The notes: generated from the sequence alone by a model not told the origin. A DNA stretch of 63,875 nucleotides, filler included, from Ministeria vibrans ATCC 50519 (GCA_943704425.1; 12 parts of 12 records of this genome joined end to end with filler, not necessarily neighbours in it); one strand, 5' to 3'. Counted from the first letter of the whole stretch, positions 195 through 5,780 are shown. A program made the numbers and translations.

Positions 195-3100
195 ATGGCC
201 TACGTCCGCGAATACGCTGCCGGCCAGGACTTTCATCGTACTCACCGCTTCGTTTCATCCTCTGAAAATATCCTCATTCTCTTCATTTGACACGCGCAGC
301 CTTCGTCTCTCTGTCCACCCTCCTTTCACATCCATCCTCTTTCTTCTCTCACCTCGTTGTGAGCCTGTCACTTTCCGTCTTTTGTGCTATGCGATTTTTT
401 TTCTCACTGACGAAAGTTCTAAACTTGTCTGTGTAGACTTCAAAACTGGCGTGGAAAGGCGCGTTACGCCCGAGGGTGTTCCTTACTTTGTCGAGTACGC
501 CACCTCGGCTGATCCTCCTCCCGTCACTTCGTCTCATGTTGTGCTTTTTTTTTTTCGTCTTCTCTTCTCTCTCTCTTTCTCTTTCTCTTCTCTCTCTCTC
601 TCTCTCGCCATCTCCACCTCCTTTAGTCTTGCCGATGAAACATCTGAGTGGCTCGACCCACGTGCCTATGCTATGAACATGAGTACGTCACTGTCACAGT
701 TCTTTTGCCGTTTTTCTTACGTTTTCAAAAATCATTTTTCCTCTCTCTCTTTCTCTTCCGCTCTCTCTCTGTCTCTCTCCTCCCCATTCCACACTCTCGC
801 TGTCTGCAGCGAAAGTCTTTGAACCCATCCGGCGGACTGCCTACCGCGTTGCCTACCACATGCGCTTCATTCAGCGTGAATTGTCACGTAAGCTGTGTGT
901 TCGTTTTTTTTCCCCCTATTTTTCGTTCTCTGACACTGATTGGTCGTTTGCAGTTGACAAGATCAGCCTCAAGGCCATTACAGACGCCTTCAATGCAAAC
1001 CACGTCAGTGAAGATGCCGATAAGGTGCGCACAAACGCATTCAATCGTTCTCCGTCTCTCAATTCCTTTTTTTTTTTTTTTTTTTTTTTGCTTTTTGTTG
1101 AAGTTGATGACTTCGGACGAAATGCTCAAAGTTCTCGAGCACATGTATGCGGATGTGGTGGGCAACGCCGAGTCTTCGGCGACGCTTGCGCTTGGCTGGC
1201 TCTTGAGCGTCTACGACCGCAAGCACTGCGGCAAGCTGACTATGCACGACTTCAAGATTGCGCTGACGGCTCTGTCGGCGTCCGGCCGTGGTCTGCGCCG
1301 TGTCTTTGAGGAGCACTTTAACATTGTGGACAGCAATCACGACTCGATGGTGTCGGCGGCGGAAATTGAGCGCTACGTGGGCACCCTGTGCAAGATGGTG
1401 TACACCATTGGCGAGGGCGCGAGCATGTGTGTGTCGATGGACAACATCAAGGCGTCGGTGGACCGTCTCTTTCCCACGGCTATGCGCGTCACGCGTGTGC
1501 AAGAGTTTGTAGGCTTTTGCCTCAGCGACGAACGTCATCTCATGTGGCTGCCGCTCATGTCGCGTCTGACAGCCTCCGAGGAGATCCGCCACGATGGCGC
1601 CTGTTTTGTGTGCAAGTTGGACCTGCGCGGTCTGCTTGTCAAGGCACGCAAATTCGGCCGTGGTAAGCTGTGCGAGCGCTGCTACATTGAAGGGCGCGAG
1701 GCAGGCCGTTTCCGCAATGGCCAACCGGTTCGCGAGTACGTGCTTGAGCCGTCGATTCTCGAGCGCTCGAGCGACTTCTTTGCGAGCGTGCGCAATACAG
1801 GCAAGAAGACGCGCCAGAATCGACTCACGACTGAGCCCAACTACCGCGACGACTTTGGCGAGCACTTGGCAAAGGAGAAGGCGCGCTCGCGCAGTGTGCG
1901 CGACCATGTGCGCAAGCAGCAGGAGGATCAGTTGCGCGCCCAGGCACTCGAAGTGGAGCGACAGAAACTGGCAGTGCAACAGCAAGAGCTGTTGGTGCAG
2001 CAGCAGGAGGCGGAGGCGCAGCTTGCAACGGCCAATCAGCGTGGCGGTGTCAGTGCGGGTGGTGCGGATCGTGACCGGGCGGCGCCGCCACCGCCCATGC
2101 CGGTGGTGCGCAGCAGTTCGTCGTCGTCGCAGGACGCGGAACAGGCACACACCAAGGTGCTGACGGTGTACGACCAGGAGACACACGCGCTCATTGCGCA
2201 GTTTGCAGCGCGTGTGGGTCAGCTCGAGTCGGGCCACGGCTCGTCGGCGCAGCTCACCAAGAACGCACCGTCGTACCGTCGCCCCGTTTCGTCGACGTCC
2301 GCCATGGAGACAACGTCGGCGAGCGAGTCGGAGACTGACGGTCCTGGAGCGCAGCGCTCGGTGGTCATTACGACGCAGACGAGCGACGACGAGTTTGGAC
2401 CGGTGATCACGGAGGAGATGTTGGTGGCAGGCCAGGCGGTGGCAGCGGGCGTCAGTGCGGTTAGCGACGCCGACGATGAGTTTGCGGCCGAGGGCGACCT
2501 GGTGAGCGCCTCGGCCGAGATGGAGTCGGTGGTGGCGCAAATGGCACTGTTTGGCGACGATTCGGACTCGGATACGGGTGACGAGATGCGACGACCGTCG
2601 TTTGGCGAGCAGCTGTTGCAGGCGGCGCGCAACGTTGCCAACACCACGTCGGCGTTGGTGTTGCAGGCGGCGGCGGTGAAGAAGGCGGAGGCGAGCGAGC
2701 AAGGAGGCAATCCGGACGAAGTGCGGGAGTGGACACAGACGGTCAACGACAAGGCGGCTGGCATGCACGAGGCTGCGCGCAAGCTGTGCCAGGTGATGAC
2801 GCGCGATCAAATGGGCCAGGCAAGCGAGGATGAGGTGGTACGCGGTGCAGAGGAGGTCAAGGCGGCGTCGACGGCGCTGCTCGACGCGTGTGCTGCCAAC
2901 GATGAGATGCACCCGAGCCCCTTGCCGTTTGCCACGACGGCCGTCGAGGCACGTCGCACGGCGGTCGAGAGCAAGGAGCACCTCGACGATCTTGTGGACT
3001 TTGCAACGCGTGCTACCAGCATGAGCTCAGCGCCACGCATGAGCACGGACCACGAAACGACAAGCGACGAGGGCGGCGCAGCTGCGGCGGCGGTGCGAGC

Positions 3101-4175
3101 GCACCAGAAGAAGCAGAAGAGCGGACGACGCGTGGGCTTTGGTGCGACGAGCACGTACTCGTACGGGGGCGGTATGACAACGACAACGGACGATGACGAC
3201 GAGACAACCGAGACAGACGCGCGCGTGACCACAACGGGCCCTTCGTCGGACAGCGAGACGGAACTGGCGTCGTCGTGGCGTCAGTACTCCATGGACCCAC
3301 ACCACTCGTCGGGCGGCGAGGAGTCTCCCTCGCCCGCTCCTGTGCGCCTCAAGCCCATTTATGACGGCCCCAACTTTGGCCGTAAGATCACTATGAAGCG
3401 TTTGTCTCTCCAGACGCAGAATCTCGCCGAGCGATGGCTGTACATTCTATTTGCCATTGAAGAGGAAGCCGGTAAGTTATGTTTTATTCTTTTGTGCATC
3501 TTTTATGTGTGACTGTGACTGTGTGTGTGACTAAGAGTGTGGGACGGTGTATGTGTGTATGTAGGAGTTGAGATTCCGGGCGTAAATGATCAGAATGTCG
3601 CGACCGAGCTGCCCAAGAAACTGCGCGATGGCACAGTGGTAAGACTAAAAAGACAGAAGAGGGAGAAAGAGAAATTTTTTGAAAAGAAAGAAAGAGAGAG
3701 AGAGAGAGAAAGGAGGGAGGGCGAGAGAGAGAGAGGGAGAAAAAACAAAGTGATAGAGAGAGAGAAGGAGGGAGGGAGAAAAAAACAAAGTGATATATAT
3801 ACATATAGAGAGAGAGAGGAAGAGAGTGGAAGAGAAATCCAAACATTCCTAAAATCCAAAGCACACTTATCTTTTTTCGCCTTTTTTCCCCGTGCAAAAA
3901 ATGCTCAGGTGTGCAAGCTGGTGAACGCATTCTTGCGCCGCCGCTCAAATACCGATGCAATTGTGCCGCATATGCCGGAAGAAGGGGCACGACTGGCAAC
4001 GATTCGAGTGATGGAGAACATGGAGTTTTTCCGCGATGGCTGTCGTCGGTTGGGTCTGTCTGACGGGGACCTGTGCAACACGTTTGATTTGGTGGAGGGA
4101 AAGGGTGGCATTGAGACGGTCCGTTGTCTTGAAGCCATTGTCCATTTTGGAAGAAGTATTCCTCAAAGCGAGTGA
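195..4175 (+). CDS. Dystrophin/utrophin-like WW-EF-hand-ZZ protein fused to a talin-type I/LWEQ domain and a C-terminal calponin-type CH domain (multi-exon)
   Basis: Spliced exons give WW 'GVERRVTPEGVPYFVD/LADETSEWLDPR'; EF region 'IRRTAYRVAYHMRFIQRELS/LDKISL...LGWLLSVYDRKHCGKL'; ZZ 'HDGACFVCK...LCERCYIEGR...PVREY'; I/LWEQ 'SFGEQLLQAARNVANTTSALV...GQASEDEVVRGAEEVKAASTALLDAC'; CH 'LRDGTV/VCKLVN...MENMEFFRDGCRRLGLSDGDLCNTFDLVEGK'. The ATG at 195 and the first two exons are tentative. Confidence 0.85.
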
Positions 4176-4389
4176 TGAAGTATTCCTCAACCGAGTGATT
4201 TTGTTGTTTTGTTTTTCTTTTGCTTTTCAAATAAATAACTCTTTATTTCGAAAATGTTCCGATTCTCTTTGACGTGGTGTCTTGGCATTTTGGTGCCAAT
4301 ATGTGTGCCTAACATTCTTTCATCGGGTCACTTACCAATAAAATTATTCATTTTTATTCATTATTGACACAATTTTCTCCCCTCGAAAC

Positions 4390-4613: not shown

Positions 4614-4651
<38 letters not shown>

Positions 4652-5780
4652 CGTCTTTTTTTAAGGCAATTGAGACACCTTATGGTGTACGACGGGCACG
4701 TGGGGTGCGGAGGCTCTGAACGATCAGGCCGACTACTTTTTGTGAGCCGGGAGGGCATTGACACGCTTGATCTGAAGACGTTGGCGATTGCGAATTTGGC
4801 ACCGCTGAATTACATTCCAGTCAGTCTTGACATGAACTTGGGGTATATTGCGGCGTCTGGGCAGGAAGGGCAGCTTGATGTGTACGCGGCAGACTCGATG
4901 CGAGTAATGTAAGGCGTCTTGACTTGGCGGTTGTGTCGTGCTGAACGTGTTGTTGTCGTTGGTGTGTCAGAGCAAGACGGTCCACCATTTCCGAGGGTGA
5001 CATCTGCAACAGTGTGCGCATTGCGTCGTACAACAACATTCCAAGAATAATAGCGGGCTGCAACGATCGTCGTATTCAAGGTGAAGCGCATGCCGAAGGA
5101 AGAACAGGAGAAAATTAACTTGTATGTTTTATAGTGTTTGACATCCCATCAATGCATTGTCTGACGACGCTGATCTGCCCGTCTGCAGTCAACACAACCT
5201 GCACAAGCCCCGACGGCAAGATGATGGCGGTGGGCACTGACATGTCTGAGGCACTCTTGTTTAATGTGCAGGGAACGCACTATGAGCGATCAATGGTCTG
5301 CACCAACACACTGAATTCGTATTTTATTGACTGATCTGTGTGTGTGTGTGTGTGTAGACCTTGCAAGCGGCGAGCGATGCGGGATTTTCATGTACGTTTG
5401 ATGGGACGGGACGACAGTTGGCAGTGGGCTTCCAGGATGGTGTGGTTGCGGTGTGGGATGTGCGGATGCTGGGAACGCGTCTGGCGCTGCTGCGGACGCG
5501 GCAGCGGCGGGCGGGCGGGGCTGTGCGCAGTGTGCAGTACTGCCGGCAAGGGGGGTTGGATCTACTTGCGTTTTCTGAGCACACGGGCTATGTGCATGTG
5601 GTGGATGCGAGAACGTTTGCGACCGACCAGGTGGTCAGTGTGGCCGAGACAGGGCAGGACATTGCTGGCTTTGCCTTTACCTCCAGCGGCCTTGTAGCAG
5701 CCACCCCCGCCGGCATGGTCGAGATCAAGCTGGACTATGCCAGGAGACGTGCCTTTCCGTCGGGCGATTACATTGAGTGA
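4390..5780 (+). CDS. WD40-repeat protein, DUF2415 family (multi-exon)
   Basis: 'ITHW/QLRHLM' N-terminal motif, WD repeats 'GFQDGVVAVWDVR', and 'DLLAFSEHTGYVHVVDART' typical of DUF2415 proteins; GT-AG introns join the ORF pieces. Confidence 0.7.

Follow-up and report, generated by a model that had tools for sequence, protein, structure and literature searches.

A predicted Ministeria vibrans protein joins a dystrophin-type WW-EF-ZZ module to a talin-like THATCH bundle and a C-terminal calponin homology domain

Published surveys place the origin of dystrophin at the base of the animals and grant its unicellular relatives only the cysteine-rich domain, carried by 'otherwise-unrelated proteins' (PMC4582122, PMC10293626). 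Adams and Brancaccio found no dystrophin in unicellular holozoans (PMC4582122), and the Capsaspora genome paper mentions, without going into domains, 'several components' of the dystrophin complex. Here, we analysed 63,875 nucleotides (nt), filler included, of Ministeria vibrans ATCC 50519 (GCA_943704425.1; 12 records joined end to end), hereafter the window, and describe one gene in it. Positions 195-4175 of the plus strand are one protein-coding gene of this unicellular holozoan, which is probably of filasterean grade, with eight predicted exons. From the N-terminus, its product comprises a WW domain, the EF1-EF2 region, a half-degenerate ZZ finger, a helix resembling a syntrophin-binding site (SBS), a Q-rich stretch, a long, disordered acidic linker, a THATCH (I/LWEQ) core, a Ser/Thr-rich linker that is likewise long and disordered, and a calponin homology (CH) domain; by coordinates, the Q-rich stretch comes before the SBS-like helix (Table 1). 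We favour, with moderate confidence, the view that this is a cytoplasmic scaffold of ∼1004 residues that belongs to the dystrophin/dystrobrevin superfamily and links the membrane to the cell cortex. The architecture is conserved and apparently undescribed, its components (dystrophin superfamily, THATCH, CH) each being known. An earlier reading, made from the sequence without database searches (the sequence-only reading), had likewise considered it undescribed, and the literature searched for LWEQ or THATCH together with dystrophin, Capsaspora, or Pigoraptor contained no description, such absence being no proof.

At least four further lineages share this architecture. When 1.84 billion representatives were searched exhaustively with HMMER, 251 matches were obtained, and we scanned the best 150 of these, plus three cluster members that were fetched in addition, with local profiles. 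Among these 153 sequences, a THATCH-like bundle was found only in P0001, P0002/P0151, P0004, P0152, and P0153. P0001 (gene L001), from a contig of a JGI metagenome, has the same exon plan, and its full architecture was read exon by exon. P0002/P0151 (Logan; 838 residues, from a 2.5-kb contig read as a transcript) is full length and holds all domains in one frame, as does P0152 of the filasterean Pigoraptor chileana (EukProt EP01137_P037629; 1016 residues), which we take to be transcript-derived and which has, besides bundle and CH domain, a 17-residue hydrophobic insert of Gly, Ala, and Val. P0004 (Logan) covers the C-terminal 503 residues, from the SBS-like helix to the CH domain. Two further Pigoraptor chileana records, P0153 (350 residues; bundle and CH domain only) and P0013 (670 residues; ending just before the bundle), are isoform-like with respect to P0152. 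The relatives are 26-40% identical to the window protein. The independently built linker of the sequence-only reading is no one-off but belongs to a conserved family, whose architecture is shared by Pigoraptor chileana and three further relatives. Besides, a metagenome scan with the family alignment found nothing, the ESM Atlas yielded no usable match, and word-indexed protein searches returned one protein each (P0001 or the query's own cluster), low-complexity words having probably filled the candidates.

As to the gene model, the exon lengths total 3015 nt, i.e. 1004 codons and a stop, and the phases read from the sequence agree at every junction, with all seven introns beginning with GT and ending with AG. 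Guanine-cytosine content is ∼60-67% in the exons and ∼42-50% in the introns, which bear (TC)n and (AG)n runs. Exon 6 alone carries the end of EF1, EF2, the ZZ-like finger, the Q-rich stretch, the SBS-like helix, the acidic linker, the THATCH core, the Ser/Thr-rich linker, and the first CH helix; it is shared with the homologue P0001 (E 5.8e-64) and covered by P0151, P0152, and P0004 (tblastn). Further upstream, residues 41-96 of P0151 align to window positions 785-1018 (tblastn), covering exons 4 and 5, and the leader preceding the WW domain is short in the relatives, too. Searches with the window were run per exon or with natural full-length relatives, all exons being taken together only in the length arithmetic. 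Could the exons for CH (3565-4175) or those for WW (195-1024) nonetheless belong to separate neighbouring genes, with the long exon standing alone? Prokaryote-style gene calling did cut the corresponding region of contig L001 into separate open reading frames, and the splice model of the window was predicted from sequence alone. However, the phases close into an in-frame coding sequence, the CH domain begins on exon 6 and is completed on exons 7-8, L001 has the same exon plan with the same junctions, and both P0151 and P0152 hold all domains in a single reading frame, so that we regard such an artefact as exceedingly improbable. The sequence-only reading, which had proposed one spliced frame from WW to CH, is borne out by the phases, the 3015 nt in frame, and the single-frame relatives; its long exon (1104-3472) starts where stated and ends at 3471. 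All of its elements were recovered close to the positions it gave, and their combination goes far beyond chance.

The N-terminal module of WW, EF1, EF2, and half a ZZ finger is homologous to the beta-dystroglycan-binding region of dystrophin and marks the protein as a member of the dystrophin/dystrobrevin superfamily with a degenerate ZZ. Its relative P0151 aligns with residues 3061-3444 of human dystrophin (HMMER, E 2e-30), from WW strand 2 through EF and ZZ into the DDTHSRIEHYASRL helix. In the window, a dystrophin-type EF-hand pair is present: with exon 6 alone, EF-hand_2 (PF09068) scored 25.4 bits against a cutoff of 27 (E 1.6e-5), this exon holding only positions 60-123 of the model and exons 3-5 the remainder, and EF-hand_3 (PF09069) scored 22.2 bits against a cutoff of 21.7 (E 1.8e-4). 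When the genome was searched, EF-hand_3 reached 26.9 bits at 1314-1571, the only such locus. The EF-hand scores of the relatives are 51.7 (P0151) and 66.2 bits (P0152).

The WW domain is split over exons of 19 residues, on which a Pfam match is impossible. Of its usual hallmarks (two Trp 20-22 residues apart, an aromatic pair in strand 2, and a Pro behind the second Trp), the YF pair, the second Trp, and the Pro are present and the first Trp is not. Exon 2 matches P0151 (PTGW..GIPYY) and L001 (LPPQWEER..GAPYF), VPYF and W..P lie 18 residues apart, just as in L001, and the stretch of P0151 that corresponds to exon 3 falls within the HMMER alignment to the WW domain of dystrophin. L001 (LPPQWEER...GAPYFA / C...TQWNDPR) and P0151 keep both Trp. 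At 452-454, one base out of frame, there is a TGG, and a 1-nt error in the G run at the first WW Trp is possible. We also observed that, with one G missing at 451-454, the upstream frame would not fit exon 1. As for the ZZ finger, four of the eight usual zinc ligands are kept, the first and third CxxC pairs remaining, which leaves one of two zinc sites. Pfam ZZ gave no match on exon 6, the best hit being ZZ_ADA2 (E 0.18); in the alignment, a canonical finger in Pigoraptor P0152 (Pfam ZZ, 1.9e-11) and an intermediate one in P0151 occupy the same position as that of the window. The WW-EF-ZZ order at the N-terminus, as proposed in the sequence-only reading, hence stands, with the qualifications that the first WW Trp is a Val and that the ZZ is half-degenerate. 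Its designation as a 'dystroglycan-complex module' cannot mean dystroglycan binding, because no dystroglycan is known in unicellular holozoans (PMC4582122).

Since the dystrophin alignment includes the SBS-like helix, the similarity to dystrophin reaches beyond the cysteine-rich domain. In this helix, VYDQETHALIAQFAARV, 15 consecutive residues are invariant between the window and P0001, and it is predicted to be helical in the P0004 model. Its equivalent in P0151 pairs, in HMMER alignments, with dystrophin DDTHSRIEHYASRLAEME and dystrobrevin DEEHRLIARYAARLAAE, which we take to be the syntrophin-binding sites of these proteins. A phmmer search of the 46-residue SBS-like stretch against the PDB gave no match, the query being too short.

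The bundle encoded further downstream is a diverged homologue of talin R13 and closer to talin than to Hip1/Sla2. While the Pfam I_LWEQ profile (PF01608) gave 18.7 bits for the window against a gathering threshold of 27.5, phmmer of 2496-3101 against all PDB sequences returned C-terminal constructs of talin-1, best among them 2jsw (R13; E 5.9e-7). Against full-length talin, the single sequence matched residues 2312-2452 and none of the other 12 rod bundles; a two-sequence profile improved the match to E 3.6e-9 and extended it into the upstream helix (talin residues 2304-2452). For 2466-3050, AlphaFold2 predicted a bundle of five helices (predicted local distance difference test score, pLDDT, 75.8; predicted template modelling score, pTM, 0.68). 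When this model was compared by Foldseek with 350,542 chains, the top seven matches were all THATCH domains, among them talin R13 (E 8e-7, template modelling score, TM, 0.58) and HIP1R (1r0d; 1e-5, TM 0.59), as well as the F-actin complex of talin R13 with its dimerisation domain (R13-DD), full-length talin, and Sla2. A second model, of the relative P0004, again had talin R13 and the HIP1R THATCH domain as its best Foldseek matches. The blocks of the bundle follow one another as in talin (upstream helix, FxEQxLxAA, W, SxxxxV..A..V...S..LL.AC), and this collinear similarity to R13, together with the five-helix fold, places the bundle among the THATCH domains. Within the same genome, the family profile scored 46.8 bits against talin (contig C12) and 17.8 bits against a Hip1-like gene (C801), which marks the bundle as a diverged THATCH core of the talin type. 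The I/LWEQ-like bundle that the sequence-only reading saw at ∼2590-3020 was hence correctly identified, sequence, profile, and Foldseek comparisons all matching that stretch to talin R13, and it is the start that shifts, to ∼2484, on account of the upstream helix H1.

An alanine-rich helical bundle might also have come to resemble I/LWEQ by convergence, without homology. This would fit the sub-threshold I_LWEQ scores of all members scored and the HMMER compositional bias term, which is high (10-24 bits) in the talin alignments. Yet R13 is the only one of talin's 13 alanine-rich bundles to match, the score climbs when a profile is used, a second member (P0151) matches R13 unaided, THATCH domains come first among 350,000 chains with each of two independent models, and the block order is collinear with talin, all of which makes convergence highly improbable. 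Because every member falls below the Pfam cutoff, automated annotation overlooks the bundle. Elsewhere in the same genome, there are four canonical I/LWEQ loci, two talin-like and two read as Hip1/Sla2-like (of the latter, only C801 was scored), and two vinculin-family loci (contigs C12, C1887, C801, C1725, C173, and C579 of G000), i.e. a full talin-vinculin set coexists with the dystrophin-like gene. The vinculin gene on C173 has microsatellites of the (TAA)n/(ATT)n type, which are of great length, and a short masked stretch at its flanks (L009 840-1508, 1225-2745), and AT-rich microsatellite introns seem typical of this genome.

The CH domain at the C-terminus is of type 3, i.e. of the calponin/transgelin/GAS2/IQGAP class. 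It is split over three exons (6, 7, and 8), and exon 8 alone has no Pfam match; in tblastn, this exon shares 53% identity with the CH domain of P0004 (8.6e-26) and also matches that of P0151 (4.4e-24). In relatives whose domain is interrupted less or not at all, Pfam CH (PF00307, cutoff 26 bits) scored 28.6 (L001), 36.8 (P0004), and 33.7 bits (P0152), which establishes its identity. Residues R766, R777, W778, E786, and E787 of the first CH helix are conserved in all five family members. The family's CH-region profile (A5) matches the CH domains of transgelin-2, transgelin, Vav, and ARHGEF6, and the fold of the P0004 CH model matches GAS2-CH3 on F-actin, transgelin-2, calponin, IQGAP, and Vav. 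Taken together, the neighbours in sequence and fold (transgelin-2, transgelin, calponin, Vav, ARHGEF6/7, Schizosaccharomyces pombe IQGAP, GAS2-CH3) are all single type-3 domains. A single CH domain had been read from the sequence at 3420-4175; this assignment is right, except that the first helix already begins at 3396.

A WW-EF-ZZ module at the N-terminus is found in choanoflagellates, too. That of Monosiga brevicollis XP_001742662 (A9UPN1, P0016) matches dystrophin at 5.8e-55, and Hartaetosiga balthica P011614 resembles the family in the same way. The C-terminal regions of both proteins match the family CH profile weakly (24.4 and 15.9 bits, respectively), a CH assignment confirmed neither by Pfam nor, for Monosiga P0016, by a PDB sequence search, and no THATCH-like bundle was detected in either of them at E<=1. 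One tentative reading of this comparison is that an older WW-EF-ZZ...CH protein may have existed in the common ancestor of choanoflagellates and filastereans, the bundle having then been gained in the filasterean line or lost elsewhere.

Does the THATCH core bind actin in the manner of talin? Talin-style binding is probably not to be expected from the residues at hand, because there is no helix after H5, the H4 contacts are lost, and the domain is acidic; the claim of two actin-binding domains, as made in the sequence-only reading, should thus be weakened. What that reading had noted as a missing dimerisation helix is indeed missing: the segment following H5 is low in complexity, and the equivalent linker of P0004 (residues 297-365) was modelled with a pLDDT of ∼30 and no long helix. 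According to a cryo-electron microscopy study of actin-binding site 3 (ABS3), talin R13 fails to bind F-actin when its dimerisation domain is lacking (PMC11831117). In the same study, the actin contacts of R13-H4 were K2429, Q2430, Q2437, V2440, and V2444, with K2443, K2445, and W2389 nearby (PMC11831117). In the HMMER alignment, the window has E, E, A, D, and A at these five contacts and A and N at K2443 and K2445, whereas the talin of the same genome (C12) keeps all five (K, Q, Q, V, V). The bundle carries a net charge of -20 (window protein) or -10 to -19 (relatives), as opposed to 0 to -2 for the canonical I/LWEQ domains that this genome encodes.

Alternatively, the protein might be an inverted dystrophin with two F-actin sites, in which CH domain and bundle both bind and the bundle acts like talin ABS3. 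Dimerisation would come from the upstream Q-rich stretch, similar to the central coiled coil of Hip1R/Sla2, and the window protein does have a coiled-coil-like stretch at 1866-2063. Besides, the bundle is homologous to talin R13 with all five helices, including the upstream one, and four of the five members keep the block-2 Trp, which in talin contacts actin D363 (PMC11831117). On the other hand, the Q-rich stretch is a gap in all four relatives in the alignment, R13 devoid of its dimerisation domain fails to bind, the H4 contacts and both lysines are replaced, the charge departs from that of canonical domains, and H4 and H5 are the less conserved helices of the family (mean pairwise identity 0.37 and 0.26, compared with 0.55 and 11 invariant positions in H2). 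Two F-actin sites hence appear rather unlikely to us. Of the two C-terminal domains that had been proposed to bind actin, the bundle has lost contacts and dimerisation helix, and the CH domain would be the likelier contact.

The conservation of H2 invites another interpretation, as this helix is homologous to the stretch of talin R13 (residues 2345-2369) which we take to be its vinculin-binding site (VBS). The bundle may be a cryptic, force-gated module that opens under tension between membrane anchor and CH domain, upon which H2 would recruit vinculin. In accordance with such a role, H2 (LLQAARNVANTTSALVLQA) fits the consensus LxxAAxxVAxxVxxLIxxA at eight of nine defined positions (PMC6001692), no other helix of the family is as well conserved, the profile weakly matches a talin VBS peptide (3s90) at precisely H2 (E 0.24), the genome encodes vinculin-family genes, and talin R13 is reported to contain a cryptic VBS (PMC11831117). 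However, H2 belongs to the core of the bundle as well, and I/LWEQ domains in general are most strongly conserved in block 1, so that the conservation of this helix is by itself non-specific, and the site is a candidate from sequence inspection. A predicted complex of H2 with the vinculin D1 domain of the same genome (supplied as two exon-encoded chains) gave no verdict (score 0.00) and weighs neither way. All in all, we consider vinculin recruitment by the bundle unlikely. The evolutionary version, in which a pre-animal linker of the dystrophin superfamily captured a talin bundle as a force-gated vinculin switch, with a cryptic VBS in H2, between its WW-EF-ZZ head and its CH tail, is decidedly unlikely. 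If it were true, dystrophin-type and integrin-type adhesion systems would have shared a mechanosensing part in unicellular ancestors.

In the membrane-to-cortex linker that we favour, the N-terminal module would dock on a membrane protein other than dystroglycan, via a tail that is proline-rich or of PPxY type, and the C-terminal half would connect this complex with the cytoskeleton of the cortex. The CH domain would be the more likely one to touch F-actin directly, for which the single type-3 CH domains of GAS2 (CH3) and IQGAP, both able to bind actin, offer precedents. The THATCH core would then most likely serve as a fold-dependent and possibly force-sensitive protein-interaction bundle, and not as a talin-style actin site. 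Several points weigh against this scenario. The docking module, in which Val (GTG 451-453) replaces the first WW Trp and the ZZ finger has lost one zinc site, the second, may have become weaker or acquired another role, and its docking partner is putative. Many single type-3 CH domains, e.g. that of calponin, do not bind actin on their own. The I_LWEQ profile stayed below gathering in every member scored (P0001 13.9, P0151 15.8 bits), and the splice model is based on consensus sites, frame arithmetic, and homology. Finally, the syntrophin-specific families PF18012 and PF23012 had no match in the genome, a result that carries no weight, as the controls were silent, too.

The features of the gene are collected in Table 1.

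Table 1. Predicted exons, domains, and further elements of the dystrophin-like gene, in window coordinates.
Feature	Position	Strand	Description
Exon 1	195-237	+	Start codon, leader of 14 codons + 1 nt; donor C/GTACTC; phase fits exon 2
Exon 2	437-494	+	WW strands 1-2, KTGVERRVTPEGVPYFV-D
Exon 3	627-682	+	WW strand 3 LADETSEWLDPR, with second Trp and Pro
Exon 4	810-887	+	Beginning of dystrophin-type EF1 region, TKVFEPIRRTAYRVAYHMRFIQRELS; resembles dystrophin FSAYRTAMKLRRLQK
Exon 5	954-1024	+	EF1 continued
Exon 6	1104-3471	+	789 codons + 1 nt, open frame
EF-hand region	1110-1571	+	C-terminal half of EF-hand_2, then EF-hand_3 (Pfam PF09068, PF09069)
Degenerate ZZ finger	1590-1748	+	First zinc site CxxC...CxxC kept; second CxxC and two His lost
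Q/E/R-rich coiled-coil-like stretch	1866-2063	+	Predicted from sequence; lineage-specific
Conserved helix VYDQETHALIAQFAARV	∼2160-2225	+	Resembles syntrophin-binding-site motif
THATCH (I/LWEQ) core	2484-3026	+	Five helices; H2 ∼2601-2702, H4 ∼2826-2894
Disordered S/T/D-rich linker	3027-3395	+	Low-complexity; no latch or dimerisation helix
First CH helix KRLSLQTQNLAERWLYILFAIEEEA	3396-3471	+	End of exon 6; helix 366-388 in P0004 model
Exon 7	3565-3638	+	CH loop and second helix GVEIPGVNDQNVATELPKKLRDGTV; matches P0004 GVKLTGVDPENAMRDLPKRLRDGVL
Exon 8	3909-4175	+	Rest of type-3 CH domain; TGA stop 4173-4175
AATAAA polyadenylation-type signal	4230-4235	+	55 nt past stop

The linkers contain a number of short motifs. 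Two acidic Ser/Thr motifs at 2310-2405, TTSASESETD and TQTSDDEFGPV, are kept between the window and P0001 and partly in other relatives, and they look like phosphorylation clusters. NAPSY (2262-2276) aligns with a linker region of P0152 that bears four (Y)K.AP[SGT]YD repeats, and this region may represent a short linear motif. In the linker behind the bundle, RRVGF (3126-3140) resembles what we take to be the RVxF docking motif of protein phosphatase 1; the aligned residues are RRVRF in P0151 and RRLRF in P0004, and the motif is absent from P0001 and Pigoraptor. The stop codon of the dystrophin-like gene lies within a tandem duplication of 24 bp (4153-4199; two copies, 91% match). Beyond the gene, a 47-nt T run (4616-4662) precedes a separate multi-exon gene on the plus strand (4680-5780) that encodes a WD40 propeller with DUF2415 (PF10313, E 4.2e-12 on 5361-5777).

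The published picture changes in that the dystrophin likeness of this family extends past the cysteine-rich domain into an SBS-like helix. Proteins that predate animals would already have carried a CH domain, at the opposite end from that of dystrophin, and one lineage apparently added a talin-derived THATCH bundle, a core that can evidently persist without a dimerisation helix or the known actin contacts. This combination bears on the assembly of the animal cell-adhesion machinery, and the gene provides a concrete protein with which to study the part of domain shuffling in building membrane-to-cytoskeleton linkers prior to multicellularity.

Compared with known systems, the family shares with dystrophin and utrophin the order WW, EF1, EF2, ZZ and a following helix that aligns to DDTHSRIEHYASRL. 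Unlike in dystrophin, the WW-EF-ZZ module of the window protein sits at the N-terminus, has Val for the first WW Trp, and retains one zinc site; the N-terminal tandem CH domains and spectrin repeats of dystrophin and utrophin are absent from it, as the sequence-only reading had rightly implied. Dystrobrevin and dystrotelin have the same EF1-EF2-ZZ, followed by a DEEHRLIARYAARL-type helix. Dystrobrevin is not known to possess WW, THATCH, or CH domains, and its pairing with dystrophin relies on coiled coils, which the window protein lacks. With talin R13/ABS3, the bundle shares five helices, including the upstream one, in collinear order (E 3.6e-9, top structural match), and differs from it in the missing dimerisation helix, the replaced H4 contacts, its strongly acidic character, and the absence of a preceding rod and FERM head. 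The THATCH domains of HIP1R and Sla2 have the same fold (1r0d, 9hdd), yet their likeness in sequence is much weaker, with no sequence-level match to HIP1R in the PDB; nor did we see in the window protein the ANTH domain, central coiled coil, or latch helix that we take to characterise Hip1R/Sla2. Among type-3 CH proteins, the window protein stands apart in that its CH domain is located at the extreme C-terminus of a dystrophin-type protein, and CLIK repeats, as known from calponin and transgelin, were not seen after it. The Pigoraptor relative P0152, finally, has the same domain order as the window protein, with a canonical ZZ finger and both WW Trp and without the Q-rich stretch, and in addition possesses the AP[SGT]YD repeats and an isoform that ends ahead of the THATCH-CH part.

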